NCBI RefSeq assembly: GCF_046119375.1
Contig: NW_027362763.1
Coordinates: forward strand, 845,370,001 to 845,434,000
Reading direction: 5' to 3'
DNA length: 64,000 nt
Origin: Phyllobates terribilis
Taxonomy: Eukaryota
The position numbers and the translations under genes were made by a program. The notes beneath the pieces were generated by a model. That model was not told the DNA's origin. It made no database searches and saw nothing but the letters and a program-made list of their open reading frames with translations. Positions 4,534 through 56,297 of the stretch are shown one piece after another (position 1 is the stretch's first letter; every line of letters starts with the position of its first letter).

Positions 4534-7500
4534 TTAAACCAAAGCAAAGGCATTGTCTGCAAATTTCGAGATATGCTTGATGAACTTTTATAAACTACGA
4601 TTATTGTACAGATCACATAGGAGCATATGCCCATTCTGTGGAAAGGTCTGAGAGGCAAGAATGACAAATTTGAAGGAGGTGATTATGGGAAAGCTTCTAA
4701 AGCTAAAATAATACCCTAACATATTGTGATCCCATCATGCCTCCCATTCCTGTAAACATTTATAGTATTTTACTTATTATGTTATATGCAATTTATTCTT
4801 ATACAATGAATGATAGTGTTTTTAAACCTTCCCACCCATTGCCAATGGAAAAAAGCTGACATATTTATTATTTTACTGGACTTGCCAAAAACCATGTTAC
4901 TGAGCTATCAATCATTACTTTCCTTCCACTCTAGGCAGTTTGGCACCATAGAAGACAGCTACTCTATGCCACAACTTCGTTAAGCAGAGTGCTGATTGAC
5001 AGGCACTTAGTTTGATTGCTTTCCTTTTGCTAAGCCACAGTTTGATAGTTCAGCTTCCTGACTCATCACACATTTCTGATTTTACTGAATATCCTTCCCA
5101 TCTCCTTTGGCACCTTTCTGTTTTAGCGGCATTTTGTAAATGCTTGTAAAATAACACAGAATATCCACTTAAAAACATAGCTTGAAAACGCAAACGTATC
5201 CACTTTCTTACCTCTAAATCTAAATCCAGTGGGGAAAATAAGTATTTGATACGCAGACGATCTTGACGAAGTTTTTATCGTAGATACACTACAACTGTGA
5301 GAGACAGAATCTAAAAAGAAAAAAAAACAGAAAATCACATTGTATGATTTTTCAATAATTGCACCTATATGTTCACATACAATTCCAATATGTTTGGACA
5401 AACAAATTCATATAGTCTATAACAGATGCAGTTCCTTAAAATAACTCAACACATGGCATATAGGACAGCAGTAGAAAACTTGTCATAGCTTACCTATTTA
5501 TAAATTTGGTGAATATTGTAATTAGCACACTTATTAAGCACGGTGTGTGCACAATGGAAAATGATATTGATTCCCATTCTTAAAGGGAATCTGTCACCAG
5601 ATTTTTGCTAACTAATCTGGGAATAGCAGAATATAGGGGTAGACACCCCAATTCTAGTGATGTGTTACTTTCTGGGCTGCTTACTGTAGTTTTTATAAGA
5701 TCACTGCTTCATCAGCAGGAGATTTTCACTAGAGGACCAGTAAACCTGTTGCCAGGTACAGTAGCCCAACCACGCTCCCCACCACTAATTGGCAACTTTC
5801 TGCTTGTCCACAAAACAGCTGCATGTCAGTGGTGTGGTCAGGGTTATACAGAGCTCAGCATTCAGAGAACTGCTAGATCTGCGGCAGATAAAACAATTTC
5901 AAAACTGGAGCACCCAGTATAGTAAGTGACACATTTCTATAAATAGGGTTTCTCCTCCGACCTCATGCTTCTCTCAGATCAGCAACACCAAAAAAAGGAA
6001 CTTCTTAATAAGGGCTAAAAATATCTTTATTTATAAATCATAAAGATTATTTAATCAGTATAAAAAAGAATATCGCAAGATGGGGGGTACGGATGAAGAA
6101 AAGGTGGGTACACCTGGTAAAATAAATATTTGACACACTGTAAATACTACAAGTAGAAGACCCCCTATAATTAAAATGCGGGCATAGTGTCAATATATCA
6201 TAATTTAGCACATACAGATCACATAAAATGCGCGTTGGGTGTGGTGGATTCCTGGTGTGGAGCACTACAGGTAACGTTACCACTATTCCCCTTATCATTG
6301 TTTGTTTAATCCCTTTATGGTTTGGGATCTTATATGCCGGTCTGGCGTCACTTTTCATTAAATAAGTGACTGTTATCTATTTTATGTGATCTGTATGTGC
6401 TAAATTATGATATATTGATATTATGTCCGTATTTTGAATATAGGGGTATTCTCTTTGTAATATTTACAGTGTAATAGAAGTCAAAAAGCCTTATTGTCAT
6501 CTGCTGGTTGACCTCAATCAAACGGAACCAAGATGCCTTAGGAATGTTGAAGGGGGAACAGATTTGAATGTGAGACCCGGTCAGGTGACGTCCAGTGAGG
6601 AGTTTTTAGGTATAACGGTCGAGCGCGTCAAACGTGAGATGATTTTTGGAGCCAAGCTGCAGAGAGAAGGAGACGTGAGCTGGATGCGCTGAGGAAACCA
6701 TCCTGACAGGTCGGAGGCAGAGACCTATGAGGCAGCACAAGAGGACGCCGGTGATCAAATGCCGGATTCACCGCAGAGGTCCCCCGAGTACCGCGGCCGC
6801 TGAGGAGAGCCGGGATCTGCTTGTGGTACTGAGTGACTTGACAATACCCGATATTGCCCCGTTATCCAATGCGCCAGAGACCGCCTCCAATGGCCGAGCA
6901 AAAAGGAGATAAGAGAGAACTGCATCAGAGGAGTCACGCCAGCAGAAACAGAGGAGCAGCATCGCTGAACAGGACCGTCACTTCAAATGATCATCCACGA
7001 TACCAGGTGTAGTGGGGTTTAGGATGTCAGGTTGGGAGGGGGACGGGCGAAGTGGAAAAAGCCAAACTAGATTTAATTGACTTTGTTAGAAAAAGACTTG
7101 CTGCCTAGCGGGAATAACTGGTGACCCCCGCTAGGGCCATTCACAGAGTTAAAGAACTGCTGTGGTGACTCCCACATTATTTTGGGAGATTGTTCATTGT
7201 TATTGTAAATTACCTGTTCATTCTTGTTACTAACCCCTTGTTTAAAACCTGGTTATATATACAGTATATATAAATTGTAGTGTTGAGCGAGCACTAAAAT
7301 GCTCGGGTGCTTAAAGCTCGGGCCGAGCTCGCCGTGATACTCGGGTGCTCGACCTGAGCAACGAGCCCAATGTTAGTCTATGGGAGACCTGAGCATTTTT
7401 GCGGCGACACCCCCGGCAGTCTGTAGAAAGCCTAAAAAGTGCCCAAAACGATAGTGACAGTGCTCAAAAGACATGGGGACAGCATGGGCATCGCCCCAGG

Positions 7501-7993
7501 AAGCATTTCTGACCCCTGGGTCACTGCTGTCAACAACGTGGTCAGAGGTATTAAGCAACTGAAACGGTTTTCCTCTGAAATATGTTAAGGAACTTCCTTT
7601 CCAGGGTAAAGACTTGTGTATAAGGTAAAATAAATAACCAAAAACAAAAATACACCTCCATACCTTGGGCTATGTTCACAAGTAGCATTTTTTATGCATT
7701 TTTGCACTTTTGTATTGTTTTCAACCGTGACAAATGCATTCACCGGGAAATGTCATTTTAACATTTTACAATCTTATCTGGCCATGTGCTGTGTGACACA
7801 TGCATACAGTGCTGAAAAGACATGGGAACAACATGGGGAAGACCCCTGGAAGCATCTCTGACACCCAGGTCACTGTCTAAAAGTGTGCTCATCAGAAGTG
7901 ATCCTTTCCGCATCAGAAGATGCAGACTTACAAGTATCCCCGTGCAAGTCCTTGTCCCAGGGCAGTGTTCAATTGTACCTCCCCCATTCCTTG

Positions 7994-9138
7994 TGTAACG
8001 GGTCTGGGAGGCGGAACCTCTGAGCTACTATACAAGGGGGCGGTCCTTGTAAGGGAGCGGGTGGCGACCAGGCAGGCAGTCACAGCAGGTGACCGGGACA
8101 GTCTCTGGAAGAACGGGCAGGAGATCACGGCAAGTGACTGGGGCAGTCTCTGGATGAACGGGCAGATGGTCACGGCAAGTGACCGGGGCAGTTTCTGGAT
8201 GAACGGGCAGATGGTCACGGCAAGTGACCGGGGCAGTCTCTGGGTAAAGGGTTGGTACGACCTGTGGCGGCTGATGGTAGATGTGAGCTCCCAGGTGAGC
8301 AGGCGAGAGTCTCTGGATAAACGGGTGGTCACAGCATGTGACGGCGGAGCCTCCAGGAAGACCAACAGACAGGCGGCAGATGAGCGCTCCCAGGTGAGCA
8401 GGCAGAAGTCTCTGGACAGGCGGGTGGTCACAGCACGTGACGGCAGAGCCTCCAGGTAGGCTAGCAGACAGGCAGCAGATGAGCGCTCCCAGGTGAGCGG
8501 GCAGGAGTCACTGGACAGGCAGGTGGTCACAGCACGTGACGGCGGAGCCTCCAGGTAGGCTAGCAGGCAGGTAGCAGATGTGCGCTCCCAGGTGAGCGGG
8601 CAAGCTGGTCCATAGACAGACTGACAGGAGTTGGAAGGCAGACCGTCGGACCTCAGGCAAGCAGGCAGGTAGCTGATGTGCGCTCCCAGGTGAGCGGGCA
8701 AGCTGGTCCTTAGACAGACTGACAGGAGTTGTAAGACAGACCGTCGGACCTCAGGCTAGCAGGCAGGTAGCAGAATATCAGGCAGGAATAAGACAGCAAG
8801 CTGGCAGGAATCTGGCAGGTATCTGGCAGGTAACTGGCAACGGGACCTGAGGGCTGAAGCAGAGTAGTGAACAGTGCAACAACATTGCTCGGGCACCTCC
8901 ATTTTGGAGGAGGTGCCTTATATATGGTGAAGTCCTCCGGCCATTGGCCGGGGACTCCTTAGGACGGCGCGCGCGGCCCCTTTAAGAGGGAGGGAGAGCG
9001 CGCGTGCGCGCCCTAAGCACAGTGGCCGGGAAGGAGCGCGCGCTGCCAGCAGAGCGGGAGGAGGACGCCGGGCACGGAGCAGAGAGGTGAGGGGAACAGC
9101 GTCCCTGCCTAGCAGAGGGCAGGGACGCCGGCGCTACA
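7994..9138 (-). repeat. 3' LTR of Gypsy #1 (contains about 45-bp and about 100-bp internal tandem repeats)
   Basis: Direct repeat of 13353-14497 with about 6 substitutions seen by eye; adjacent GTACCCCCCCCT is the reverse of the polypurine tract. Confidence 0.95.
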
Positions 9139-12100
9139 GTACCCCCCCCTTTAGGCCCCCCCTTTTTTAGGCCAGACAGAAATTTAGCAAGGATGAGAGG
9201 GGCATGGATGTTCTCCCGGGGCTCCCACGTTCTCTCCTCAGGACCAAACCCCTTCCAATCTACTAGAAAAAATGTCTTTCCTCTTACCCTTTTGGTGGCA
9301 AGAATGTTCTCTACCTCAAACTCGTCCTCAGCAGAAACCGGAGCAGGAGGCGTACCTGTAGACTTGGAAAAAGAGTTAAGTATCACAGGTTTGAGGAGAG
9401 ATACATGGAAGGAGTTAGGGATCCGTAAGTTGGCCGGGAGTTTCAATTTATAGGCCACCGGGTTGATCTGACTGATGACCTCCAGAGGACCGATGAACCG
9501 AGGCCCTAACTTGTAAGAAGGTATCTTGAGTCGGACATATTTAGATGAGAGCCAGACTTTATCTCCAGGACGAAATTGTGGAGGATCCAGGCGTTTTTTG
9601 TCAGCGTGTCTTTTCATCTGTTCGGACGACTGAAGGAGTGCGGATCGGGTACTCTCCCAAATGGAGGAAAATTTGCTAACGAGAGATTCCGCAGCCGGGT
9701 TGTCCACAGAGGTGGAGACAGGAAAAGGAATCCGAGGATGCTGACCGAAGACTACAAAAAACGGGGATTTGGAGGAGGATTTGCTCTCATGATTGTTATA
9801 AGAGAACTCGGCCCATGGTAGGAGATCCACCCAGTCTGAATGATGGGCATTAACGAAGTGCCGGAGGTAACTGGTCAGGTTCTGATTGATCCGCTCCACT
9901 TGACCATTGGACTGTGGGTGGTAAGCGGAAGAGAAGTCCAGGGTGACGTCTAGCAGTTTACAAGTGGCTCTCCAGAAGCGTGAGGTGAACTGTACCCCAC
10001 GATCCGACACGATGTGGAGGGGCAGGCCATGAAGACGAAAGATGTGACGAATAAAGTCTTTAGCTAGCTCGGGTGCAGACGGGAGGCCTGGCAGGGGAAC
10101 GAAATGAGCCATCTTGGAGAAGCGATCAGCGACCACCCAAATGACCGTACAACCGGCAGAGACTGGGAGGTCAGTTATAAAGTCCATTGCTATATGCTGC
10201 CAGGGGGCAGCAGGTACAGAAAGCGGAAGGAGGCGACCGGCTGGCAGATGTCTCGGAACCTTGTTGCGGGCGCAGGACACACAGGCAGAAACAAAGTCTA
10301 TTACGTCCTTGTGCAGGGTAGGCCACCAGTAGTGCCGGGTAATAAGCTGGAGGGTCTTTTTCTGACCGGCATGGCCAGCCAGTTTAGACGAGTGACCCCA
10401 GTGAAGGATCTTCTTCCGATCAGGTACTGATACGAACGTCTTTCCGGGAGGGAGACGATTTAGACTCACGGGAGCCACCTGCATTACTCTGGCGGGATCG
10501 ATGATGTGTTTCGGATCTTCCTCGAGATCAGACACCAGAAAGGATCGAGACAAGGCGTCCGCCTTGACGTTTTTGTCAGCCGGGCGAAAATGAAGAACAA
10601 AATCAAAGCGAGCAAAAAACAAGGACCACCGGGCTTGGCGCGGGTTAAGTCTCTGGGCATGCTGGAGGTAAGCCAAGTTCTTGTGGTCAGTGTAAATTAT
10701 TACCGGGTGAAGAGCCCCCTCGAGCAGGTAACGCCACTCCTCCAATGCCAGTTTGATGGCCAATAACTCTCGGTCTCCTATGGAATAATTGCGCTCTGAG
10801 GAGGAGAAGAGTTTAGAGAAGAAGCCGCAAGTTACCATCCTCCCGGAAGATGATTTTTGAGTAAGTACCGCTCCGGCTCCAGAGGAGGAGGCGTCAACTT
10901 CCAGGAAGAACTGCTTGTTGCCGTCCGGGCGATGCAGCACCGGGGCGGAAGAGAAGGCCTGTTTTAAGGAAAGAAAGGCCTCCTCTGCTTCGGGTGGCCA
11001 CTCTTTGGGATTAGTACCCTTACGGGTGAGCGCGGAAATTGGGGCAGTCCGGGAAGAGAAGTGTGGTATGAAGAGGCGGTAGTAGTTGGCGAAGCCCAGG
11101 AACCGCTGAATGGCCTTCAACCCCTCCGGTCGAGGCCATTTCTCGATGGCAGACAGTTTCTCTGGATCCATTCGTAGGCCGGTCTGAGAAATAATGTAGC
11201 CCAAAAACGGAAGCGAGGTCTGCTCAAAGAGGCACTTCTCGTATTTAGCGAAGAGGTGATTCTGCCTGAGCCTGAGCAGGACCTGACGAACGTCCCTCCG
11301 GTGAGTCTGGAGATCCGGAGAGAAGACCAAGATGTCGTCCAGGTACACCACTACGCAGGAGTAGAGAAGGTCCCGGAAGATGTCATTGACCAACTCTTGA
11401 AAGACGGCAGGAGCGTTACAGAGACCAAAGGGCATTACCAGATATTCATAGTTGCCGTCCCGGGTGTTGAATGCTGTCTTCCATTCATCCCCCTGACGGA
11501 TACGAACCAGGTTGTACGCCCCACGGAGGTCCAGTTTGGTGAAGATTCTAGCCCCCCTCAGATGATCAAATAACTCCGGAATGAGCGGAAGGGGGTACTT
11601 ATTCTTCACCGTGATCTGGTTAAGGCCTCTATAGTCTATACAGGGACGAAGAGAGCCGTCCTTCTTTTTGACGAAAAAGAAGCCTGCTCCCGCCGGGGAG
11701 GTAGATTTCCAGATGAATCCCCTGGCCAGATTCTCCTCAATATATTCGGACATCGACCGGGTCTCAGCAGCGGATAATGGATAAATACGCCCACGGGGAG
11801 GAGTAGTACCGGGTAACAGGTCGATAGGGCAGTCGTATGGTCTATGAGGGGGTAGTGTCTCTGCCTCCTTTTTATTAAAGACATCAGCATAAGACCAATA
11901 AGGAATCGGAAGTCCAGGTAGATTAGCTGGGGTAGGAGAAGGACGGACGGGATGGACGGGAACCAGACAGGTCTTATGGCAGTCCTGTCCCCAGCGAAGG
12001 ACCTCTCCGGTCTGCCAGTCAAGCACGGGTGCATGTCTCTGGAGCCAAGGTAGACCTAGCAAGAGGGCGTGAGAGAGTCCAGGCAGAACATGAAAGGAGA

Positions 12101-12407
12101 TACTCTCAGAATGCAGCATTCCCACATGCAGAGTAATGGATTCGGTGATGAGTTGGATGGGGCGTGGTAAGAGACCCCCATCCACGGCAGCAACAGACAA
12201 GGGTACAGCCAGAGGTTTGGTGGGGATGCGGTATTTCTCTACCAGGGACTGTGAAATAAGATTCCCGGCTGCTCCAGAGTCAAGTTGGGCTAGTTCGAAA
12301 TAACGGTTCTCCCCGCAGACGATTGAGACTGACAGCAGCAGAGATGGAGAGGATTTATTCTTGTCTAGGTCGACCTCTCTGAGCGAACCTAGACACAGGC
12401 GTTTCCC
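8982..12407 (-). CDS. Gypsy #1 Pol (protease, RT, RNase H, integrase, chromodomain), expressed by -1 frameshift from gag
   Basis: Frame is open from the slippery site: QLDSGA protease, YLDD RT, RNase H, H-H-C-C and DDE integrase, C-terminal FEVENILATKRVRGKTFFLVDWKGFGPEERTWEP chromodomain. The stop lies inside the 3' LTR. Confidence 0.93.
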   Translation of the reverse strand, partial: GKRLCLGSLREVDLDKNKSSPSLLLSVSIVCGENRYFELAQLDSGAAGNLISQSLVEKYRIPTKPLAVPLSVAAVDGGLLPRPIQLITESITLHVGMLHSESISFHVLPGLSHALLLGLPWLQRHAPVLDWQTGEVLRWGQDCHKTCLVPVHPVRPSPTPANLPGLPIPYWSYADVFNKKEAETLPPHRPYDCPIDLLPGTTPPRGRIYPLSAAETRSMSEYIEENLARGFIWKSTSPAGAGFFFVKKKDGSLRPCIDYRGLNQITVKNKYPLPLIPELFDHLRGARIFTKLDLRGAYNLVRIRQGDEWKTAFNTRDGNYEYLVMPFGLCNAPAVFQELVNDIFRDLLYSCVVVYLDDILVFSPDLQTHRRDVRQVLLRLRQNHLFAKYEKCLFEQTSLPFLGYIISQTGLRMDPEKLSAIEKWPRPEGLKAIQRFLGFANYYRLFIPHFSSRTAPISALTRKGTNPKEWPPEAEEAFLSLKQAFSSAPVLHRPDGNKQFFLEVDASSSGAGAVLTQKSSSGRMVTCGFFSKLFSSSERNYSIGDRELLAIKLALEEWRYLLEGALHPVIIYTDHKNLAYLQHAQRLNPRQARWSLFFARFDFVLHFRPADKNVKADALSRSFLVSDLEEDPKHIIDPARVMQVAPVSLNRLPPGKTFVSVPDRKKILHWGHSSKLAGHAGQKKTLQLITRHYWWPTLHKDVIDFVSACVSCARNKVPRHLPAGRLLPLSVPAAPWQHIAMDFITDLPVSAGCTVIWVVADRFSKMAHFVPLPGLPSAPELAKDFIRHIFRLHGLPLHIVSDRGVQFTSRFWRATCKLLDVTLDFSSAYHPQSNGQVERINQNLTSYLRHFVNAHHSDWVDLLPWAEFSYNNHESKSSSKSPFFVVFGQHPRIPFPVSTSVDNPAAESLVSKFSSIWESTRSALLQSSEQMKRHADKKRLDPPQFRPGDKVWLSSKYVRLKIPSYKLGPRFIGPLEVISQINPVAYKLKLPANLRIPNSFHVSLLKPVILNSFSKSTGTPPAPVSAEDEFEVENILATKRVRGKTFFLVDWKGFGPEERTWEPRENIHAPLILAKFLSGLKKGGPKGGGTVAPASLPSARQGRCSPHLSAPCPASSSRSAGSARSFPATVLRARTRALPPS
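12347..12407 (-). promoter_or_regulatory. -1 ribosomal frameshift signal: G GGA AAC slippery site plus predicted H-type pseudoknot
   Basis: Slippery heptamer at 12401-12407; stem 1 12387-12395 with 12362-12370 (9 bp); stem 2 12374-12379 with 12347-12352; pol is in the -1 frame relative to gag. Confidence 0.8.
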
Positions 12408-13339
12408 GACCTCTCCGGGCAGGCACGGATCCGGTGCTCCTTACTGCCACAGTAGAAGCAGCTCCCCTCGGCATGGCGTAAGTCCTGACGGGTTTTGACC
12501 ATCTTGGTCTGGTCGACCTGCGTAGGCACAGGAGAGTGTACCTGGGGAGAGACGGAGGGAGTGACGGGTTTCTGAAAAGTAGGAGCTAGACGTGGAAACC
12601 TCCTCTCACGGGTGACCTCTTTGGCACGCTCCTGGAACCGTAGGTCAATCCGGGTGGCAAGAGTTATTAGGTCATCGAGAGTGGTAGGAATGTCCCGACT
12701 GGCAAGTTCATCTTTAATACGGCCGGACAGACCCTCCCAGAAGACGGATACCAGAGCGTCGTTATCCCAGGCCAGCTCCGAGGCAAGGGTACGGAACCGT
12801 ATGGCATATTGGCCCACGGTGAGACTTCCCTGACGGAGGCGTAGCAGAGATGATGCGGATGAGGTCTTCCGTCCGGGTTCGTCAAAGACTTTCTGGAAAG
12901 CCGTGAGAAAGGCAGGCAAGTCGGACACCAGGGGGTCTCCTCTCTCCCATAGAGGATTTAGCCAGGCCAGGGCCTCCCCGGTGAGATGGGACATGATGAA
13001 GGCAATTTTGGCCCGGTCGGAGTTAAACTGGTGGGACAATAGTTCAAAGTGCAGGGTGCACTGATTTATGAAGCCCCGAGCCTGGGCGGAGTCGCCTCCG
13101 AAGCGAGGAGGTGCAGAAATCCGGGGTCCGGGGTAGGATACCGTGGTATTAGTGGGCAGCGGAGCTGCCGGATTGCGAGTCATGGCACTGGCGGAGGTTG
13201 CTGGCGGAGCAGTCAGAGTGTCCAGGCGAGAATTGACATTCCGCAGGTGACCCAGGATGGACTCCTGTTGGGACCTCTGACGGGACAGTTCATGACACAG
13301 GTCCGAGAGCGAGGGAGCTTGGGTGCCACCGGGTTCCAT
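12389..13339 (-). CDS. Gypsy #1 Gag (PEG10/RTL1-like capsid with CCHC zinc knuckle)
   Basis: 316-aa ORF: PPRFGGDSAQARGFINQC...EGLSGRIKDELA, with CFYCGSKEHRIRAC knuckle. Confidence 0.93.
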   Translation of the reverse strand: MEPGGTQAPSLSDLCHELSRQRSQQESILGHLRNVNSRLDTLTAPPATSASAMTRNPAAPLPTNTTVSYPGPRISAPPRFGGDSAQARGFINQCTLHFELLSHQFNSDRAKIAFIMSHLTGEALAWLNPLWERGDPLVSDLPAFLTAFQKVFDEPGRKTSSASSLLRLRQGSLTVGQYAIRFRTLASELAWDNDALVSVFWEGLSGRIKDELASRDIPTTLDDLITLATRIDLRFQERAKEVTRERRFPRLAPTFQKPVTPSVSPQVHSPVPTQVDQTKMVKTRQDLRHAEGSCFYCGSKEHRIRACPERSGNACV

Positions 13340-13340
13340 G

Positions 13341-13350
13341 GCCCGAGCAA
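13341..13350 (-). promoter_or_regulatory. Non-tRNA primer-binding site complementary to the predicted transcript 5' end (self-priming)
   Basis: Minus strand TTGCTCGGGC lies 2 nt from the 5' LTR and is the exact complement of 14244-14253 (minus GCCCGAGCAA), 30 nt downstream of TATATAA (14277-14283). Confidence 0.72.
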
Positions 13351-13352
13351 AC

Positions 13353-14497
13353 TGTAACGGGTCTGGGAGGCGGAACCTCTGAGCTACTATACAAGGGGGC
13401 GGTCCTTGTAAGGGAGCAGGTGGCGACCAGGCAGGCAGTCACAGCAGGTGACCGGGACAGTCTCTGGAAGAACGGGCAGGAGATCACGGCAAGTGACTGG
13501 GGCAGTCTCTGGATGAACGGGCAGATGGTCACGGCAAGTGACCGGGGCAGTCTCTGGATGAACGGGCAGATGGTCACGGCAAGTGACCGGGGCAGTCTCT
13601 GGGTAAAGGGTTGGTACGACCTGTGGCGGCTGATGGTAGACGTGAGCTCCCAGGTGAGCAGGCGAGAGTCTCTGGATAAACGGGTGGTCACAGCATGTGA
13701 CGGCGGAGCCTCCAGGAAGACCAACAGACAGGCGGCAGATGAGCGCTCCCAGGTGAGCGGGCAGAAGTCTCTGGACAGGCGGGTGGTCACAGCACGTGAC
13801 GGCAGAGCCTCCAGGTAGGCTAGCAGACAGGCAGCAGATGAGCGCTCCCAGGTGAGCGGGCAGGAGTCACTGGACAGGCAGGTGGTCACAGCACGTGACG
13901 GCGGAGCCTCCAGGTAGGCTAGCAGGCAGGTAGCAGATGTGCGCTCCCAGGTGAGCGGGCAAGCTGGTCCATAGACAGACTGACAGGAGTTGGAAGGCAG
14001 ACCGTCGGACCTCAGGCAAGCAGGCAGGTAGCTGATGTGCGCTCCCAGGTGAGCGGGCAAGCTGGTCCTTAGACAGACTGACAGGAGTTGTAAGACAGAC
14101 CGTCGGACCTCAGGCTAGCAGGCAGGTAGCAGAATATCAGGCAGGAATAAGACAGCAAGCTGGCAGGAATCTGGCAGGTATCTGGCAGGTAACTGGCAAC
14201 GGGACCTGAGGGCTGAAGCAGAGTAGTGAACAGTGCAACAACATTGCTCGGGCACCTCCATTTTGGAGGAGGTGCCTTATATATGGTGAAGTCCTCCGGC
14301 CATTGGCCGGGGACTCCTTAGGACGGCGCGCGCGGCCCCTTTAAGAGGGAGGGAGAGCGCGCGCGCACGCCCTAAGCACAGTGGCCGGGAAGGAGCGCGC
14401 GCTGCCAGCAGAGCGGGAGGAGGACGCCGGGCACGGAGCAGAGAGGTGAGGGGAACAGCGTCCCTGCCTAGCAGAGGGCAGGGACGCCGGCGCTACA
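13353..14497 (-). repeat. 5' LTR of Gypsy #1
   Basis: 1145-bp direct repeat of 7994-9138 with TATA box at 14277-14283 on the minus strand. Confidence 0.95.
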
Positions 14498-14502
14498 CCT
14501 TG

Positions 14503-15500
14503 CAATGCAAGCGCAAGTATGCAGCCTGCCACCCACCCACGCCCAGGCTGCAATACCATACTGCTAGCTTGCTTGCACTTGAAATTGGGCCTTTTAGTTT
14601 GGAGGAGGCCGAAGCTGGCCACTACCTCATGGCTACTTCGGCAGCGAGGTATCCATACTCTGTCCCCAGCTGCCCGGCGGCTGGGTGTCCATACTCGGTC
14701 CCAAGCTGCCCCGCGGCCGGGTGTCCATAAACGGTCCCCAGCCACAACCGTTTCTCCTTGGAACATCACCCCACACACTTTTCTTAGCCCGGCCTGCTTT
14801 AGGGCAGCATTGTACGAGCCCACCAGAGAACCAGACTCCTCCGGTGGGCCCTGGCTTCTCCATCAGGGGAGTTGAGAGTGCCAAGGTGAGGAGCATGATG
14901 ATGATGATAAAAGTTAGCATCTGCTTTGTTTTCTTGGAATGCAAGCGTAAGTGTGCAACCAAACACCCACCCACCCCCAGGCTACAATACCATACTGCTA
15001 GCTTGCACTTGAAATGGGGCCTTTTAGTTTGGAGGAGGCCGAAGCTGGCCACTACCTCGTGGCTGCTTCGGCAGCGAGGTATCCATACTCATTCCTCAGC
15101 CGCCCGGCAGCCGGGTGTCCACTCTCAGTCCCCAGCCGCCAGGGGGCAGCCGGGTGTCCATACTCGGTCCCCAGCCGCCCCATGGCCGGGTGTCCTCACA
15201 CGCTCCCCAGCCACCTGGGGGCGGCCGGGTGTCCATAAACGGTCCCCAGCCGCCCCCATTTCTCCTTGGAACATCCCCCCAACACACTTTTCTTAGCCCG
15301 GCCTGCTTTAGGGCAGCATTGGATGAGCCCACCAGAGAACCAGGCTCCTCTGGAGGGCCCTGGCTTCTCCATCAGGGGAGTTGAGAGTGCCAAGGTGAGG
15401 AGCATGATGATGATGATAGAAGTTAGCGTCTGCTTTGTTTTCTTGGAATGCAAGCACATGTATGTAGTAGCAGCTAGGCCTGAGGTGGTCAGCGTTTTGG
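14503..15500 (+). pseudogene. Duplicated, antisense-oriented fragments of the element's own hAT transposase, with a YSVPS-coding minisatellite
   Basis: Plus-strand translation CKRKYAACHP...SLLALEIGPFSLEEAE...LMA...YPYSVPS aligns with the minus-strand transposase RKRKFAANAP...SRLLGLEMLPFRLVETE...LMA...RYSVPS; two about 430-bp units. Confidence 0.8.
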
Positions 15501-16040
15501 CGCATATCCTACCTCCTCCGAGGATTGCTGGATGTTTTCCTGCTACTATCCCAGTTCTATGACTCCCGTTAAAACAAAGCTTCAGGTGATGAATGATGGA
15601 TGAGGTGGTGGCAAAGGAGAAAGAGCAGGAGGAACAGGGACCATTCACATCAATATCAGGCCAGTCAATCACACATGTCTTGTAGGATATGTTTCTGTAC
15701 CAAAAGGAGCGGTTCGGCTACACAGTTAAAGGGCATGCAGTGAGTGCAATGCCTACCAAAAATTTCGAGGCACTCCAATGCCCCTTGGAAGTGACATGGA
15801 GGTCAGAGGGCCTTAACTAAACTGTTTTTTCCATTTATAGCAACTGGGTCTCCTGCGCACTGTTGGCCTAAGCAGTGAATTGAATGCTTTCCAAAAATTA
15901 TGAGGAACTGCAATACCCCTTGAAACAGACGTGGATTACAGCATACTAAAAACCTTCTACCCATTATTGGGGAGTGGGTCTCTCTTAGTGTTCACCTATG
16001 CATTGAAAAGCAAAAGCTGACTAAAATTAGGAGGAAATGC

Positions 16041-16625
16041 AATGCCCGTTGGAAGAATGGTGGAGGTCGCAGTGGAATAAAAAGACAATATCAATGCCCC
16101 TTGGAAAAGTGGTGGAGGTCGCAGTAGCTTAACAAGATGGTTTTAATGCCCCTTGGAAAAGAGGTGGAGGTCGCAGTAGCTTAACAAGATGGTTTTAATG
16201 CCCCTTTGAGAAGTGGTGGAGGTCGCAGTAGCTTAAAAAGACGGTTTTAATGCCCCTTGGAGAAGTGGTGGAGGTCGCAGTAGCTTAACAAGACGGTTTT
16301 AATGCCCATTGGTAGAGATGTGGAGGTCTCAGTGGAATAAAAAGACAATATCAATGCCCCTTGAAAATGTGGTGGAGGTCGCAGTAGCTTAACAAGATGG
16401 TTTTAATGCCCCTGGGAAAAGTGGTGGAGGTCGCAGTAGCTTAACAAGATGGTTTTAATGCCCCTTGAAAGAATGGTGGAGGTCGCAGTAGCTTAACAAG
16501 ACGGTTTTAATGCCCCTTGGAAGAGCGGTGGAGGTCACAGTAGCTTAACAAGATGGTTTTAATGCACCTTGGAAGAGACGTGGAGGTTGCAGTAGCTTAA
16601 CAAGATGGTTTAAATGCCCCATGGA
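16041..16625. repeat. 52-bp tandem array, about 11 units, inside hAT #1
   Basis: AATGCCCC starts at 16041, 16093, 16145 ... 16613 (exact 52-bp period). Confidence 0.92.
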
Positions 16626-17046
16626 AGAGCCATGCAGTACAGCATCTTAAAAACATTATTCCCATTATTGGGGAGTGGGTCTCCCATAATCTTTGCCTAT
16701 GCCTTCCAAGCAAAAGCTGCTAAAAATTAGGAGGGAGGAACTTGCAATGCTGGCAAACAAGAGCCATGCAGTTCAGCATCTTAAAAACATTATTCCCATT
16801 ATTGGGGAGTGGGTCTCCCATAGTCTTTTCCTATGCCTTCCAAGCAAAAGCTGCCAAAAATTAGGATGGAGGAACTTGCAATGCTGGCAACATGGACCAA
16901 GGTCACCCTGGTGGTATAGTGGTGGTGGAGGCTGAGGATAAGGAGAAGAGCAAAAAAAAACCCGAAATGAGGAAGCGTATACCCATGTGTGGGTATAAAG
17001 CGGTGCATGGGAATACACCTCCTGAAATAACACAGTGGATTTAACT

Positions 17047-20000
17047 TTATGTTACTCTGCTGTCATTTGGTGGTGATGAGAAGTCTGGCCCAATCCAGCC
17101 CTTGATCATTTTGATAAGGGTCAGCTTGTCAGCATTGTCAGTTGACAGGCGAGTGCGCTTATCTGTTATAATTCCCCCAGTGGCACTAAAAACACGCTCC
17201 GATAACACGCTAGCGGCAGGGCAGGCCAGGACCTCCAAGGCGTACAGAGCGAGTTCATTCCAAGTGTCCAGCTTGGATACCCAATAATTAAAAGGCACAG
17301 AGGAATCACGGAGGACGCTGGTACGGTCGGCAAGGTACTCCCTCACCATCTTTTTAAACTTTCCACTCCTTTTGAGAGTACCCCGCGCCTCAGGGCCTGT
17401 AAGCTGGACCGGTCTCAGAAAACTGTCCCAGAACGTTGATAGTGTTCCCCTGCCTCTGCTGGATTGGAGTTGCGTCTCTCTCGCCTGTACGCCTTGGTTG
17501 GGCAACGAACTGTGACCTCTGCCGCTAGCGTGTTCAGATGGGAATTTTTTTAAGAGTTCTGCAGCAAGGGCCTTCTGGTACTGCCCCATTTTTGTAGACC
17601 TCTCCACCTCAGGAACAAGAGAGTGAAAGTTCTCCTTGTAGCGGGGGTCTAAAAGTGTCACCAACCAGTAATGACTGTCACCCAACATTTTTACAACGCG
17701 AGGGTCACGGTTAAGGCAGCGTAACATAAAGTCAGCCATTCGTGCCAGACTGGTAACGGTCAGGACTTCCGTGTCCTCACCAAGATGACGACTGACCATG
17801 CTCTCCTCCTCCTCCTCCTCCTCCCCCCTGTCCTCAGGCCACCCACGCTGAACCGACGGTATGACAGTTGTACAGGTACTACCGTCTACAGCACATGATA
17901 CCAGCTCCTGTTCTTCCTCCTCCTGCTCCTCCACGTTGGGATGAGATGAGGCTGGGCTGTGTGTAATCGCCTGCTATGGCTTCTTGATCCATCTCATCAT
18001 ACTCTGGCTGCAATGCCTCCTCTTTAATTCTCTGCAGAGAACGTTGCAAAAGACAGACAAGTGGGATGCTGACGCTAATGATGGCATCATCGCCACTCAC
18101 CATCTTGGTGGACTCCTCAAAGTTTGTCAGGATGGTACATATGTCAGATATCCAGGTCCACTCCTGAGGTCTTATGTGTGGAGTCTGACCTGAATATCGA
18201 CGGCCTTGTTGCAGCTGGTACTCCACAACTGCTCTCTTCTACTCACAAATCCTTTGCAACATGTGGAGGGTAGAGTAACAACGTGTGGGGACATCACACA
18301 CCAGTCGGTGTGCCGGAAGCTGCAAACGCTGCTGCAACACAGCAAGGGCGGCGGAAGCTGTAGCCGACTTGCGAAAATGAGCGGCGTACTTTGACGAGCA
18401 GATCTGGCAACTCGGGGTATGATTTAAGAAACCGCTGAACCACGAGGTTATGCACATGAGCCCGGCATGGTACGTGTGTGATCTTGCCTCGCCTCAAAGC
18501 CACCACCAGGTTACGGCCATTGTCACACACGACCTAGCCTGGATGTAGGTTCAGCGGTCTCAGCCACAGATCTGCCTGCTCTTTCACAGCTGTCCACAAC
18601 TCACAAGCAGTGTGAGATTTATCACCTAAGCTTATGAGTTTCAGCACAGCCTGTTGCCGCTTGGCTGAGGCAGTACTGCAGTGCTTCCAGCTTGTAACTG
18701 ATGTGGTGATATCTGACATGGAGGATGAACATGAGGAGGAGGAGGAGGATGATGCGCAGGAGCTGTACACTGTGGGGGCAACTCTGACTGACATAGGGCC
18801 CGCAATCCTCGGTGTGGGGAGGATGTGTTCCGTCCCAAGGTCCGACAGGGTCTCGGCTTCCACTATGTTTACCCAGTGTGCCGTCAGGGAGATGTACCGT
18901 CCCTGGCCACAAGCACTTGTCCACGTGTCCATTGTCAGGTGGACTCTCCCAACAACTGCGTTGTTGAGGGCATGGCAGATGTTTTGGGACACGTGCTTGT
19001 GTAGTGCGGGGATGGCACACCGGGCAAAATAGTGTCAGCTGGGGACTGAGTACCGAGGGACAGCCAGCGCCATAAGGTTGCGGAAGGATTCCGTCTCTAC
19101 CAGCCTAAAAGGCAGCATTTCCAACCCAAGCAGTCGTGAAATGTGCGAATTTAGGACTGTGGCCTGTGGGGCGTTGGCTGCGAATTTGCGCTTTCGTTCA
19201 AAGCTCTGGGATATGGACAATTGAACGCTGCGGTGGGACGTGGACGTTGATGCTGCTTCTTGAGAAACTACCATAACAAGTGAAGACTGAGAGGAGGGGG
19301 CATCTTTGCATGCAGTATGGACAGGGGATTGCCTTGCACGCACAACAGGGGGTTCTATTACATTCACAACAGTGGAAGAAGCAGTGGTGACACCCGCTGA
19401 CACTGGCCGTGGACCCTGGGGTTCGCCCCACAAAGTCGGGTGCTTTGCTGCCATGTGCCTGATCATGCTGTTGGTGGTCAGGCTGGTAGTTTTGTCACCC
19501 CTGCTGATGCTGGCATGGCAGTTGGTACAAATGGCCTTTTTGGGGTTATCAGCAGAGTCTTTAAAAAAATTCCAGACTCTGGAAGACCTACAGGTTGTAC
19601 TGGCAACGTCCCTCATGTTGGTGTTACGGGGAACTTTTGCCCGCCTTCTGTGTGCGGCCACCACACTGCTTCTTCCTGCCTGTTGGGGTTCTCTGCCTCC
19701 CTTCCCCTGTGTGCTGCTGGCCTCACTCTGCGTATCCTCCTGCCACGTTAGGTCAGTTACTAGATCATCCACCACCTCCTCCTCTTCCACTTGCGCACCA
19801 CGATCCTCCTCCTCACTACGTGGCAATTGTGTCTCGTCATTGTCCACCTCTTGTGACAAATTGCCAGCTTCGACTTCCTGTGGCCGTGGCTGTTCAAATA
19901 TTTGGGCATCGCTACATGGGATCTCCTCTTCCACCACTTCAAGCGGAGCAGGCGAGGGGCACAAATATGGAAATGGACCAGTGAACAGCTCTTCAGAGTG

Positions 20001-20381
20001 TCCAAGTGTGGGATCAACTGCTGTCTGACGACACTCGGCATGGTGGGAGGAAGGAACGTCAGGGTGAGGAGGAGTATGCAGTCGAGACTCACGGCTACTA
20101 AAACTTGACCGTGTGGAAGACAGACCGGAGGTGGTGGTGCCCAGGTAACTGGAAGTATTATCTGCTATCCAATTAATAACCTGTTCACACTGATCAGTTC
20201 GCAATACTTGTGTTGTAGTGTGCTTCCCTAGTAATTCGGTCAAGAAGTGGGAGCGAGAAGATGTGGCTGTTTGTGGTGGCACATTTTCACCTTGGCCACG
20301 GCCCCGTCCTCTACACGCATCATCACCAGAACATCCAGTTCCACGTCCCTTGCCACGCGCATTGCCACGCACCTTGCCCAT
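17047..20381 (-). pseudogene. hAT transposase pseudogene (BED finger, DDE core, hATC dimerisation domain)
   Basis: BED VWNFF...CTNC...RHMAAKH; TMDTWTS; CDNG; CxxH; SERVFS. Broken by about 3 in-frame stops (19035, 18534, 18239) and 2 frameshifts. Confidence 0.92.
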
Positions 20382-20579
20382 TGTAAATTAAGTAAAATAG
20401 CTTACACTCGCACTATCAATGGAAAAAGGTTAATAAAAAGGAGATTAGAAGCGTGGAAGAGGAAAACCACAGTTCTATTTCTCTGGCCTACACCAGAATC
20501 TTTTAAACAGATATATTTGTGACTGAACAGACAGGGAGACACTATTTATTTATTTTTTACATAAAACAGGCCAACAGCT

Positions 20580-22800
20580 GGATAATACAGAGATTTGAAC
20601 CGTGGAACTGCAAAACCACAGTTCTAATTTACTGGCGTATACCAGACTTTTTTTAATAGATATATTTGGGGCTGAACAGTCAGCGACACACTCAAACTGT
20701 TTTTTTTATGTAAAAAAGGCCCAAAAGTGGATAATACAGAGATTTGAACCTTGGAACTGCAAAACCACAGTTATAGTTATGTGGCGTACACCAGAATCTT
20801 TCAAACAGATATATTTGTGTCTGAACAATCCGGGAGACACTATTACAGTTTTTTTTTATGGCAAAAAATGCCAAAAACAGGATAATACAGAGATTTGACC
20901 CGTGGAACTGCAAAACCACAGTTCTATTTTTCTGGCCTACACCAGACTATTTTAAACAGATATATTGGTGTCTGACCAGTCAGGGAGACACTATTACATT
21001 TTTTTTTACGGCAAAAAATGCCAAAAACAGGATGATACAGAGATTTGACCCGTGGAACTGCAAAACCACAGTTATAGTTATGTGGCGTACACCAGACTCT
21101 TATAAACAGATATATTGGTGTCTGACCAGTCAGGGAGACACTATTACAGTTTTTTTTAAGGCAAAAAATGCCAAAAACAGGATAATACAGAGATTTGACC
21201 CGTGGAACTGCAAAACCACAGTTATATTTTTCTGGCCTACACCAGACTCTTTTAAACAGATATATTGGTGTCTGATCAGTCAGGGAGACACTATTACAGT
21301 TTTTTTTACTGCAAAAAATGCCAAAAACAGGATAATACAGAGATTTGACTCGTGGAACTGCAAAACCACAGTTATAGTTATGTGGCATACACCAGACTCA
21401 TTTAAACAGATATATTGGTGTCTGACCAGTCAGGGAGACACTATTACTGTTTTTTTTAACGGTAAAAAATGCCAAAAACAGGATAATACAGAGATTTGAC
21501 CCGTGGAACTGCAAAACCACAGTTATATTTTTCTGGCCTACACCAGACTCTTTTAAACAGATATATTGGTGTCTGACCAGTCAGGGAGACACTATTCCAG
21601 TTTTTTTTAAGGCAAAAAATGGCAAAAACAGGATAATGCAGAGATTTGACCCGTGGAACTGCAAAACCACAGTTATATTTTTCTGGCCTACACCAGACTC
21701 TTTTAAACAGATATATTGGTGTCTGACCAGTCAGCGAGACACTATTCCAGTTTTTTTTAAGGCAAAAAATGGCAAAAACAGGATAATGCAGAGATTTGAC
21801 CCGTGGAACTGAAAAACCACAGTTATATTTTTCTGGCCTACGCCAGACTCTTTTAAACAGATATATTGGTGTCTGACCAGTCAGCAAGACACTATTACAG
21901 TTTTTTTTTACGGCAAAAAATGCCAAAAACAGGATAATACAGAGATTTGACCCGTTAAACTGCAAAACCACAGTTATATTTTTTTCTGGCCTACACCAGA
22001 CTCTTTTAAACAGATATATTGGTGTCTGACCAGTCAGGGAGACACTATTACAGTTTTTTTTACGGCAAAAATGCCCAAAACAGGACAATACAGAGATTTG
22101 ACCTGTGGAACAGCAAAACCACAATTATAGTTATGTGGCATACACCAGACTCTTTTAAACAGATATATTGGTGTCTGACCAGTCAGGGAGACACTATTAC
22201 AGTTTTTTTTAAGGCAAAAAATGGCAAAAACAGGATAATGCGGAGATTTGAACCATGGAACTGCAAAACCACAGTTATATTTTTCTGGCCTACACCAGAC
22301 TCTTTTAAACAGATATATTGGTGTCTGACCAGTCAGGTAGACACTATTACGTTTTTTTTTTACGGCAAAAAATGGCAAAAACCGGATAATGCAGAGATTT
22401 GACCCGTGGAACTGCAAAACCACAGTTATACTTATGTGACGTACACCAGACTCTTTTAAACAGATATATTGGTGTCTGATCAGTCAGGGAGACACTATTA
22501 CAGTTTCTTTTTACGGCAAAAAATGCCAAACACTGGATAATACAGAGATTTGACCCGTGGAACTGCAAAACCACAGTTATAGTTATGTGGCATACACCAG
22601 ACTCTTTTAAACAGATATATTGGTGTCTGACTAGTCAGGGAGACACTATTACAGTTTTTTTTACGGCAAAAAATGCCAAAAACAGGATAATACAGACATG
22701 TGACCTGTGGAACTGCAAAACCACAGTTATATTTTTCTGGCCTACACCAGACTCTTTTAAACAGATATATTGTTGTCTGAACAGTCACAGACACACTCAA
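20580..22800. repeat. About 150-bp tandem array, about 15 units, in the 5' leader of hAT #1
   Basis: GGATAATACAGAGATTTGACCCGTGGAACTGCAAAACC starts at 20580, 20729, 20880, 21030 ... 22685; two alternating unit variants. Confidence 0.95.
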
Positions 22801-23174
22801 TTTTTTTTTTTTGGGGGGGAAATACCAAAAGGTTAATAAGACGTGTATTTGAACAGTCTGACTGAGGAAAAAAAAAAATACAGGATTTAGATGAAAAAAA
22901 AAAAATTTTTTCCTGGCCCCTGAGACCGGGGTGATAAGTCTAGCAATTTGACCAACTGGAGCACACAGGACTGTAATGCAGTGTTTGCTGGTATAACCAC
23001 TGTGTCTCCTATACAGCCTGCCTGCCTACCTGATATCTGGGATGGATATTAGTCCTGAGAAGGACTGTTTGTTTGATTTGGCCGGCTTTAGAGACCCTAC
23101 ACTAACTATTTCGGAGTATAAATCTCTCCCTAGCTCAGCAGCACTGACCCTACACTGGCTGATACGGAGCGACT

Positions 23175-23310
23175 GTGTCCAAGATGGCGGCGCCCGGTTT
23201 TAAATACTCGAGGTGACGCTGTGCGGCCAGCCAATCACTGTAATGCCCACAACCAACATGGCTGCGGCATTACAGTGACTGGCTGGCAATCCCTGCATGT
23301 TCATTGGCTC
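23175..23310 (-). promoter_or_regulatory. Predicted inward-facing promoter of hAT #1
   Basis: CCAAT boxes (23231-23235, 23303-23307), TATTTAAA (23199-23206, minus strand), YY1/initiator-like GCCGCCATCTT (about 23181-23191). Confidence 0.5.
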
Positions 23311-25486
23311 TGTAAAGAGCGCCAAACGTGCAGGGCGGAGACCCGAGCTCCGGCCCGAGTAACCCGGAAATGCTCGGTGCTCGCCGAACATCCCAAGTAG
23401 TGAGATGCTCGGGCGAGTACCGAGCAGTGTCGAGCATGCTCGCTCAACACTAATAAATTATTTTTACACATCTCTGACTGCCCTCACTTCGTGTTTCTGT
23501 GTGTTGCATTTCTGACACCTGCATTACAACAGTGTGCCAAATATTTATTTTACCAGGTGTACCCACCTTTTCTTCATCCGTACCCCCCATCTTGTGATAT
23601 TTTTTGTTATACTGATTGAATAATTTTTATGATTTATAAATAAAGATATTTTTTTAAGCTCGTATTACCCTTATTAGGAAGTTCCTTTTTTATGTGCCGT
23701 TGTCTGTTTGTGCTTCTTTTCTGGCTATTTTGATTATGGATTGAGGATTGTTTTGGCGTCATTCTCTCAGATCAGGTAGCAAAAACCTGGTGACAGATTG
23801 CCTTTAAAGGCAGGTAATCTTTAAGAAGATCTGTCAGCAGGTTCCCTAACAATTTTATTTCAATTGAAGCACTACAGTATGTAGAGAAAAGACAAATGTC
23901 TCCGCCGGGCATCTGCTAAGTGTTGCAATGCTAGGCTGCACAGAATTGAGCACATGCTAGACTAACCATCCCAATTAAAGACAAGAAACAAGAGATAATG
24001 TAGCACATTTTTTACCTAATACACAAAGCCGTTTGGAAGCTGCTCACTAGTTTACATATAAAGTAAAATAAAAAAGATGTTGATGGCTGGCCTCTACAGA
24101 AATGCTGGAGTTTCCTGAAGCATCTTCTACTTCAAAAAATAAAGGGGTTCACCGGCGTGTAAACGACGGTGTGCATGTAACGTGGGGGGTGGCAGCCATG
24201 TCTCACATCATCCGCACCACGCTACAGGAAAATGGGTGTGTGTGCTGCTGTTATCTTGGCGATATGCTTCTGCAGACTGCATGCTGCCTCTTGACTTGGC
24301 AGGTCAGGACCAGATAGATGAGGGAGACCAGAGTCCAAAAATAATGTTTTCTTTACTGAACAACTTGATGAAAAATATATACCTCAGATAGCAGGCACAA
24401 CACTTAAAGAATGCTTCTTCTGCACAATACAGAGGCAGGAAGTTTACGTTTACACTTGTTACATAACTCCAGCAAACCATTATAAGACATCCATATTCCT
24501 CTGTGAGGACCACAAGGATCGAGGTGTGTCTCTACAGCAAGCACAGCTGGTTTCAACTCCCAGTTGATTTGTGTGGACCTCACTGGCTGAGGTACTTCGG
24601 TACGACTCCTCACTAGTACTCTCTAAGTGCATCCGGTGAGGCCACATACGCCTTGCTGTGCCACTGTATCTCTAGAACTCATATCCCAGCCTGACCATCT
24701 TCTCCTCTATGACCCTCAGGTCTGGTTACACTCTAAATTCTTATCTTCTAAGAAAAACGTTTGCTTAAGACCCGCTTGCCTGTGATAAGGAATGCTTACA
24801 TGAGCTTAGTCCTTGCTTTAGGCCCCCTTGCTTGTAATAAATAATCTTGCTGCCACTTAGTCCGTATTTGCTTCAGGACATACTATCCGACATGGCCTCC
24901 CTTTTTGGCACACAAACACCCATTTACATGCAGATCTGCAAGCTACAAGACTATAGGTCATTTCTTCTCAAACACTGGTCCCTATCAGCCTAACAGGAAA
25001 CTGCATTCCTTGTGCCCATGTACCTGTAATTTCTCCCATTCAGGGCCAGTTCAAATAGTTAACCCTGTCTGCAGGTAACCCATTTTTACAGAAAACAAAC
25101 TAGATAAAACTATATTTATAACATGGCAATGCATTCGATCTTCAAGGTGGGCATGGGCAGCTTCTCCATTCCTTTACAGGTACACATATTCTTAAGCTGA
25201 GCGTTTTATCAATTATATTCAGTATTTGCAAACTGAGCAAAAAAAAAGACAACTTGGTTTGGCCAACTAGGGAGATGTTTCGGGTGGCCTGCTGTGATCA
25301 TTCCATGAACCCATTAACTGAATCCCTATCAGGCACTTGAAGTATTTCCATGAAAACCATACAATATCCTTATATTCTGAATTGCTGATTTCCCACAGCA
25401 CATCACAATTGGCATATTATGCGTTTATATTTTATGTCTGTATACCCCCTTAATACATTTGCTATTTGTTGTTTATGTTCTTTTAG

Positions 25487-53700: not shown

Positions 53701-55043
53701 ATTTTCCGGTAATCTACACACATTCTCATGGTGTTGTCTTTCTTTTTGACCAAGACTAGTGGAGCTGCCCAGGGGCTACAGCTTTCCCTGATTACCCCAG
53801 CCTCCTTCATGTCTCTAAGCATTCCCTTGGCGTGTTGGTAGTGTGCAAGGGGTACGGGTCGATACCTCTCTTTTATGGGAGGATGGTCTCCCGTGGGGAT
53901 GTGATGTTCTACCCCCTTGACTCGCCCGAAGTCTAACGGGTGTTTACTAAACACTCTCTCGTACTCTTGAACCACCCGGTAGACTCCCTGTTTCTGGTGG
54001 GAGGGAGTGGAGTCAGTACCCAAATGTAGTTGCTGACACCAATCCTCCATTTGTTGTTTAGAGCCGTTACCTTCCTCCGGAGAAGATGGAGGCAAGGGTT
54101 CTACGGACTGTATAGAATTCTGATTGATGGTATACAATTTGGCTAGCGTGGCATACCGGGGCAGGTACACTTCCCTCTTCCCGATATTTATTATGCGAAC
54201 GGGCACCCTCCCATGGCGTACATTGACCACCCCCCGTGCTGTCAAAATGGTGGGCCTACTGTCTGAGTAAACTGGTTCTACCATTGCCTGGTAATCTCTA
54301 CCTCTCAGACCAATAGCCGCCCGGCACCAAATCATCATTTCACTTTTTGGGGGCATGGCAATAGGGAAAGGGTCACACATTCTCACGCTACCAATCTTAC
54401 CGCCGGAGAGTTCCACCTGTTGCCGTCGCATCAGTGCCCGGATCTCTTTTTGGAGCACTCGCTGCTGGCCGGAGCTGGCGTTCTTGGCAACCTGCTGTAA
54501 AATAAAAATCACCTCTGCAAGACAATTTTCAATTACATTAGTTCCTAGAGTTATCTTAGGGTGACTCTCGCGCTTATCAATGTCCACAATGATCAGTCCC
54601 TGGGCTGCCAGCTCGACTCTACCGATTTTAATGGTCACCTCTTTAAATCCGATCTGTGGCACGGGCTGACCATTGCTGGCGATGATACTCAAGTCGTCGT
54701 CAGGGTAGCGGGTTATATCCGAGTCATTCCAGTACTGCTTGAAGAGCACGTACGGGATGGTGGTGACCTGTGACCCAGTGTCCAGTAGGGCACTCATAGG
54801 AATGCCATCCAGTACCACAGGCAAGACTGGACGTCCTCCCACATATTTGTCACGCCAGTTTGATGGGCCTGATGATCTTTTTCCTAGGGGTTGGCCCTCT
54901 ACCCTAGGTTGTGCCAGTTTAAAGGACAGTACCTTGCCATATGTCCGGGTTGATTGCAGCGGCGGCAGATAGGTTGTCCGTCCTCGTTGTATCGGTCGCT
55001 GGGTCTTCCTCTGGCCGGTGGGGTCCTCCTTGGTCGGCGCCAC
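50786..55043 (-). pseudogene. Gypsy #2 Pol (protease, RT, RNase H, integrase), disrupted
   Basis: LLDTGSQ, YLDD, RNase H and integrase DDE motifs; in-frame TAG at 52149-52151 (likely TGG>TAG) and a 1-bp frameshift near 51185. Confidence 0.92.
54865..54923 (-). promoter_or_regulatory. -1 frameshift signal: T TTA AAC slippery site plus predicted pseudoknot
   Basis: Heptamer at 54917-54923, 8-nt spacer, stem 1 54902-54908 with 54883-54889, stem 2 54893-54897 with 54865-54869; pol is -1 relative to gag. Confidence 0.75.
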
Positions 55044-55879: not shown

Positions 55880-56297
55880 CTTCCTCCCCCCTAGTGGACC
55901 GTGGCCTACCTTGCGATGATCCTCTTCCGTAGGCCGCGGCTCCGCAGTGGATCGTCAGGGTTGAGGACCTTCCGTCGCGCTCCTGTGACGTCGGCGTCTG
56001 CTGGGCTCCTTCCAGGACCTTACGCAACGTCCGGACGTGAGGCGGGGCTTCAGTTCTCGTGCGCTTTCGGAGTCCACGCCCCTCTTCTTCCCGCGCGGCG
56101 TCTTCAAGATGGCGTCCAACGGCGGGAAAACTCCACGGATGGCGGGAAGAAGGCAGAAGATGGTGCCGGATGGCGGGAAAACTTCGCGGATGGCGGGAAG
56201 AAGGTAGAAGATGGCGCCGGATGGCGGGAATCTTCACCACTGGTAAGTTTGAACAGTCTTTTTCAGGCACGCAGTACCCGGTGGTTGCAGGCACGAG

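Follow-up and report, generated by a model that had tools for sequence, protein, structure and literature searches.

We analysed a 64,000-nucleotide stretch of the Phyllobates terribilis genome (NCBI RefSeq assembly GCF_046119375.1, contig NW_027362763.1, positions 845,370,001 to 845,434,000 of the forward strand; hereafter the window), which carries two hAT transposons, hAT-1 on the minus strand (7278-23452) and hAT-2 on the plus strand (37702-48710). Each holds a tandem array of about 2 kb between a promoter-like module (dyad, CCAAT, TATA-like and YY1-like motifs) and the ATG of its transposase, and from module to start codon the sense strand is strongly depleted of ATG. On balance we lean towards the view, drawn from sequence comparison, that the arrays are element-borne expansions, of the variable number tandem repeat (VNTR) type, of a 5′ leader that would be free of AUG, retained in the mRNA and scanned by ribosomes, in a clade of anuran hATs with a BED zinc finger.

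Expectations for ATG were taken from dinucleotide-preserving shuffles of short segments. A non-redundant leader set was drawn from seven elements (hAT-1, hAT-2 and the elements L001, L002, L003, L004 and L008 found in public contigs), each unit being counted once; its 2,226 nt contain no sense ATG where about 30 would be expected (29.1 when segments are summed, Poisson P of about 2e-13). ATG is the sole trinucleotide absent from this set, the next most depleted standing at 0.46 of its expectation. No plus-strand stretch of the window goes longer without ATG than 38098-40560 in hAT-2, at 2463 nt (the runner-up spans 559 nt); it begins in the dyad about 10 nt before the TATA box and ends on the base that directly precedes the transposase ATG. 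Upstream of that TATA box there are 10 ATGs in 414 nt. The unique segment that precedes the hAT-2 array (503 nt) has none against 8.0 expected, a count of zero that was reached in 0 of 3000 dinucleotide shuffles, and the array has no sense ATG against 47 on the antisense strand. GAT and GTA are also missing from the hAT-2 unit but, unlike ATG, their free runs end at the edges of the array.

The last upstream sense ATG of hAT-1 lies at 23259, within the dyad, and the unique leader before its array (22809-23196, minus strand, 388 nt) has none against 3.4 expected (P=0.012). Eight sense ATGs are found in the hAT-1 array, three of them a TACG to TATG change in one unit variant and five of them singletons; such private changes, which include CpG decay, fit a dead copy. 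The leader of L001 lacks ATG where 5.5 would be expected, and all five public elements have zero ATG upstream of their start codons. Each of the seven start codons (ACAATGG in hAT-1) has A at position -3 and opens onto a basic N-terminus.

The controls lie at expectation: antisense ATGs, the segments from terminal inverted repeat (TIR) to TATA box (10 against 7.7 expected and 6 against 3.9) and six 3′ trailers. An outgroup hAT, L009, has ATGs as near as 75 nt before its start codon. A Ty3/gypsy element on the minus strand (gag 54899-55879, pol 52149-55043, integrase 51183-52142) provides an internal positive control, because the leader of a retroelement is exonic; in its gag region (54899-57221) the minus strand lacks ATG for 1344 nt (55878-57221), a run that stops at the gag start codon at 55879. 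Long ATG-free runs may mark the leaders of transposable elements in general. A second such run on the minus strand (49403-50333, 931 nt) has no obvious open reading frame (ORF) start at its end. In the hAT elements, as would be expected of a scanned 5′ untranslated region (UTR), upstream AUG is absent on the sense strand only, over a region with the promoter-like module at one end and the start codon at the other.

Tandem Repeats Finder (TRF) places the hAT-1 array at 20441-22787 with a period of 150 (also scored as a 301-bp dimer), 15.6 copies and 90% matches, and the hAT-2 array at 38619-40444 with a period of 110, 16.6 copies and 94% matches; set out in 150-bp units on the minus strand, the former runs from 20452 to 22808. 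The hAT-1 units are 88-99% alike, save the two nearest the ATG (79-84%). Seven of the hAT-2 units are identical, and the way the variants follow one another points to recent duplications of several units at a time. The units are A/T-rich, with a GC content of 0.36-0.37 (0.36 for the hAT-2 array) against 0.47 for the window. Folding compared with shuffles is inconsistent (z of -0.6, -4.0 and -2.8) and reveals no common property of an unstructured leader: the 110-bp unit folds no better than its shuffles (z -0.6), and the 150-bp unit has an internal hairpin and as a dimer (21500-21799, minus strand) folds much better (z -4.0). The arrays have no match in Rfam or in a phage collection.

The arrays belong to their elements and are not separate insertions, since neither a target-site duplication (TSD) nor a TIR was found at the array borders and the units, as judged by BLAST of one unit against the window, occur only inside the two elements. 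They appear to travel with the element, and copies then gain or lose units, a point that is shown in part: in the read layout, 911 and 1970 nt of the hAT-1 array are bypassed at contig joints, which implies that other hAT-1 copies have fewer units. Comparison of the array flanks with the units gave no significant similarity, so the flanks do not show an origin in situ. No unit similarity was detectable among hAT-1, hAT-2, L001 and L003; each family is seen to have amplified an unrelated segment of its own putative leader. An earlier inspection of this DNA from its letters alone (the sequence-only reading) had described two hAT families with such an array between promoter-like module and ATG, with no evident similarity between the units of the two, and with CCAAT, TATA, YY1 and dyad motifs near the 5′ ends. 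TRF, the motifs, and the TIRs and TSDs of the elements bear this description out.

The modules share one order of parts, a dyad whose spacer of 17-18 nt carries CCAAT or ATTGG, then a TATA-like box, then a GCCAT-type YY1-like motif. The hAT-1 module (23180-23310, minus strand) has CCAAT at 23303-23307, 22-nt dyad arms at 23226-23247 and 23266-23287 (95% complementary, 18-nt spacer), the TATA-like TATTTAAAA at 23199-23207 and the YY1-like GCCGCCATCTTGG at 23180-23192. The hAT-2 module (38064-38145, plus strand) has 13-nt arms at 38064-38076 and 38094-38106 around a 17-nt spacer with ATTGG, then TATAAGA at 38109-38115, GCCATTTT at 38120-38127 and GCCACCATTTT at 38135-38145. Called from motifs, these modules are putative promoters. 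In contigs from public runs the depth bin that spans the hAT-1 dyad (23179-23326) stands at about 10 times its neighbours, and loose contig ends at this dyad represent other elements in which the same dyad runs into a different TATA box. This high depth and the joining of the dyad to other TATA-box variants make the module seem common to many elements in these frogs.

Sequence evidence extends the layout of promoter-like module, array and ATG to at least two further diverged families, found on independent contigs. L001 (from ENA, about 40% identical to the transposases of the window) has two 307-bp units, 97% alike, that end about 80 nt before the ATG, and L003 (also from ENA, about 34% identical) has two 132-bp units, 99% alike, that stop about 30 nt short of position 276, the likely true ATG. 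Both contigs terminate inside the array. The contigs of L002, L004 and L008 (public short contigs, L002 and L008 from Logan) end 91-105 nt before the ATG. Two distant hAT loci from a metagenome scan (27-39% identity) were not used.

We propose that transcription would start at the dyad/CCAAT/TATA/YY1-like module, some 250-430 bp inside the 5′ end, and that the RNA would reach the transposase AUG by way of the unique segment before the array and then the array itself. All of this would be retained in the mRNA, forming a long 5′ UTR, A/T-rich and without AUG, for ribosomes to scan; both proposals draw on the ATG depletion. An ATG-free zone bounded by module and start codon supports a start site upstream of the array, speaks against an intron, and is what selection against upstream AUGs would be expected to leave. 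Expansion would probably come about through slippage during replication, unequal sister exchange or a switch of template in gap repair. Leader and trailer would be the only internal non-coding spaces of these elements, A/T-rich with homopolymer runs and prone to expand, and the sole visible filter would be that productive lineages keep a leader without upstream AUGs.

Arrays are found in the trailers of both elements, so the 5′ position is not exclusive. In hAT-1 the trailer arrays (15912-16890, minus strand) begin about 157 bp past the stop codon, placing arrays on both sides of the transposase, and consist of a 52-bp repeat of 11.3 copies (16041-16629) between 134-bp units. The hAT-2 trailer (44283-44566, plus strand) holds, right after the stop codon, about 1.5 diverged copies of the 110-bp unit (44283-44451, 75-81% alike), followed by an 89% duplicate (44444-44566, 123 bp) of its own coding sequence at 43508-43630; leader-unit copies and a coding duplicate in this place suggest an old internal rearrangement. 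Since trailers fill with arrays too, the shared position reflects available non-coding space together with the AUG filter and need not reflect a dedicated function of the array.

Several points weigh against the proposal of a scanned, retained leader. First, an ATG-free unit amplifies to an ATG-free array, so the signal within arrays may persist by descent, without continuing selection. Second, scanning of a 2.4-2.8 kb leader would be inefficient and worse in expanded copies, and the hAT-1 unit folds (z -4.0). Third, the hAT-1 candidate donor AGG|GTCAGT at 23148/23147 reads as the consensus-like GTGAGT in many other copies (in two runs, in most of their contigs), and a donor of this kind would place the array in an intron. 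Fourth, the hosts of L001 and L003 are taken to be frogs solely from their nearest named relatives. Finally, the eight public runs found consist of contigs, none of which is on record as RNA; they are probably DNA, and neither a transcript start nor a junction was seen in them.

The donor at 23147 counts in favour of an alternative put forward by the sequence-only reading, that the array lies in a 5′ UTR intron. Transcription would begin at the upstream promoter, splicing would join a short first exon to an acceptor located 25-33 nt ahead of the ATG, and the array, removed with the intron, might act there as an enhancer, a nucleosome array or a source of small RNA. We regard this as unlikely, albeit a serious contender. 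Splicing would save the ribosome kilobases of scanning, candidate sites exist in both elements and the sequence-only reading had considered the acceptors plausible. The hAT-1 leader between array and ATG (20382-20451, minus strand) has at 20414-20413 an acceptor-like AG preceded by a pyrimidine tract, and in hAT-2 a CAG ends at 40535 and two CAG|GTCTGT sites near 38312 and 38424 are candidate donors. However, acceptor-like motifs are at chance level (7 sense against 11 antisense in the 3-kb hAT-1 leader), the CAG at 40535 has a poor tract that fails a simple pyrimidine-tract filter, and the pre-ATG sequences of the seven elements have no conserved acceptor in common. At the strongest donor of the hAT-1 copy, CAG|GTAGGC at 23030/23029, most other copies of the family have GC. 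The unique sequence that would be intronic and the units of four families are free of ATG, which is not required of an intron. Four public runs cover the whole stretch with array-length joints and no GT-AG junction; they are DNA-like and so uninformative on splicing. Marginal similarity between the 5′ end of L002 and hAT-2 38245-38280 (score 35, shuffle maximum 37) was not used as evidence of splicing. What stands of the earlier claim is that the array would be transcribed, indirectly indicated by an ATG-free zone that starts at the dyad/TATA module in both elements; its removal as an intron and its plausible 3′ splice sites fare poorly.

A reading that would give the array a purpose of its own is that unit number is a heritable, fast-mutating translational rheostat of transposase output, or that the repeats serve as a platform, in RNA form, for factors of the host or the element. 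The array would on this view be a selected dosage-control module rather than junk that is tolerated. We consider this doubtful.

Each unit might instead have promoter or factor-binding activity, with transcription starting in the array or at its end and unit number tuning expression, as in the monomer promoters of mouse L1 (PMC9022269, PMC6454616). The hAT-1 unit does contain CCAAT followed by the TATA-like TTTAAAAG, with GCCATTTT in some units, and a CCAAT lies between the hAT-2 array and the ATG; an ATG-free array is predicted here too. Short motifs of this kind are to be expected where DNA is A/T-rich, however, and the units show none of the similarity to their own promoter-like module that would mark them as monomers of the L1 type. 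The unique leader before the array is also ATG-free, which points to a start site further upstream. The transposase-site motifs are absent from the arrays (the subterminal CGAGC of hAT-1 and GTTCG of hAT-2 from the units of their own element), and unit lengths of 110, 132, 150 and 307 bp fit no single nucleosome rule. A monomer-type promoter or regulatory array is therefore improbable.

Independent satellite insertion in front of the ORF, which the sequence-only reading had itself named as one of the outcomes that would speak against its proposal, or an assembly artefact is scarcely credible, for although assembling arrays is difficult and their units may be miscounted, nothing specific favours either, the borders and the confinement of units to the elements are as described above, the layout is repeated in four families, and contigs from public runs extend over the array as well as its borders.

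The assignment of both elements to hAT follows from their ends and their proteins. The 15-nt hAT-1 TIR TAGTGTTGAGCGAGC is identical at 7278-7292 (plus strand) and 23438-23452 (minus strand) and is flanked by an 8-bp TSD, ATAAATTG at 7270-7277 and ATAAATTA at 23453-23460, matching at 7 of 8 positions. The TIRs of hAT-2 are TAGAGATGAGCG at the 5′ end (37702) and TAGGGTTGAGCC at the 3′ end (48710, read inward), with a perfect 8-bp TSD CTTATAAT at 37694-37701 and 48711-48718. In both elements the short TIRs start with YAG, and the transposases have the BED finger (PF02892) and the hAT dimerisation domain (PF05699). Their RNase-H-like cores align with anuran ZBED4/6-like proteins that bear PF27039, and both are members of a broad anuran group annotated as ZBED4/6-like. 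They are 27-45% identical to one another and hence related. The closest named transposase fragments are from Phyllobates terribilis (86-91% identity) and Ranitomeya. Word-based protein searches with the N-terminal ORF of hAT-1 and the ORF of hAT-2 found no transcript-like contig of either family.

hAT-1 is a dead copy. Its transposase (17047-20381, minus strand) survives in three pieces, 20381-19035 with the BED finger, 18992-18534, and 17934-17047 with the dimerisation domain, broken by in-frame stops and a frameshift. The element is 16.2 kb long because a long terminal repeat (LTR) retrotransposon (approximate limits 7994-14200, strand not assigned), with LTR copies at about 7994-8840 and 13353-14200 and chromodomain-pol matches at 9201-10838, is nested in its trailer. 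The hAT-2 element is 11.0 kb long and encodes a transposase of 1226 codons (40561-44241, plus strand) with a single in-frame stop, at codon 961 (43441-43443). Its 3′ half contains debris of other elements, with a reverse-transcriptase fragment (46209-46571), a weak Tc1-like helix-turn-helix (45006-45605) and a decayed 18S rRNA fragment (47905-48263, minus strand; Rfam RF01960, 52.8 bits).

Other hAT remains lie nearby. At the left edge of the window, 60-213 is a second copy of the hAT-2-type 3′ end (compare 48560-48710), which shares the GTTCGACGAACA subterminal repeats and has two differences in its TIR; just outside this end is a 394-bp tandem repeat of 2.7 copies (314-1362). A third hAT transposase fragment (61858-63180, minus strand), nearer the hAT-1 lineage (62% to an Anomaloglossus protein), is truncated by LTR-like 45-bp repeats at 63461-63771.

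Tandem repeats within transposons are already known to expand and to seed satellite DNA, as in the Tetris foldback element of Drosophila virilis (PMC4079207); Xenopus miDNA4, a miniature inverted-repeat transposable element, and Helentron arrays have been reviewed (PMC12628747), and repeats occur in the UTRs of LTR retrotransposons (PMC7004042). Like these, the arrays of the window are internal and move with the element, vary in unit number, and have homogenised central units and diverged edge units. They differ in that (i) the carriers are hATs of autonomous type; (ii) the array sits in a putative leader between promoter-like module and start codon; (iii) such arrays are found again in several diverged families, whose units are unrelated; and (iv) their sense strand is ATG-free. 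hAT is not mentioned in this context in the review (PMC12628747); the papers on poison-frog genomes describe the abundance of hAT but are silent on arrays within it. In function the nearest parallel is the mouse L1 5′ UTR, where a mobile element likewise carries a variable-number tandem array, of about 200-bp units, between its 5′ end and first ORF, and YY1 motifs take part in initiation (PMC9022269, PMC6454616, PMC11602158). L1 monomers, however, are the promoter of a long interspersed nuclear element, whereas the hAT arrays belong to a DNA transposon and lie downstream of a unique promoter-like module to which their units are dissimilar.

The sequence-only reading had put the arrangement forward as its best candidate for an undescribed module. 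The shared layout is real and recurs in at least two more families; the 5′ position is not exclusive and internal tandem repeats have precedents. The new result here is the ATG-free leader. A long leader before the first AUG also has a counterpart within hAT: the transposase mRNA of maize Activator (Ac), the founding element, has an unusually long leader of several hundred nucleotides, which in contrast to those of the window is not tandemly repeated.

Poison-frog genomes hold several gigabases of young transposons, to which array-bearing hATs add bulk and in which they scatter satellite seeds. If the leader were spliced out, the ATG depletion would need another explanation. If the array is a scanned AUG-free leader, the ATG-free run offers an easy way to gauge from sequence alone how far a transposon 5′ UTR extends, and the question for these elements would be how their transposase gets translated with kilobases of repeats ahead of it and whether its dose is tuned by the number of repeats.

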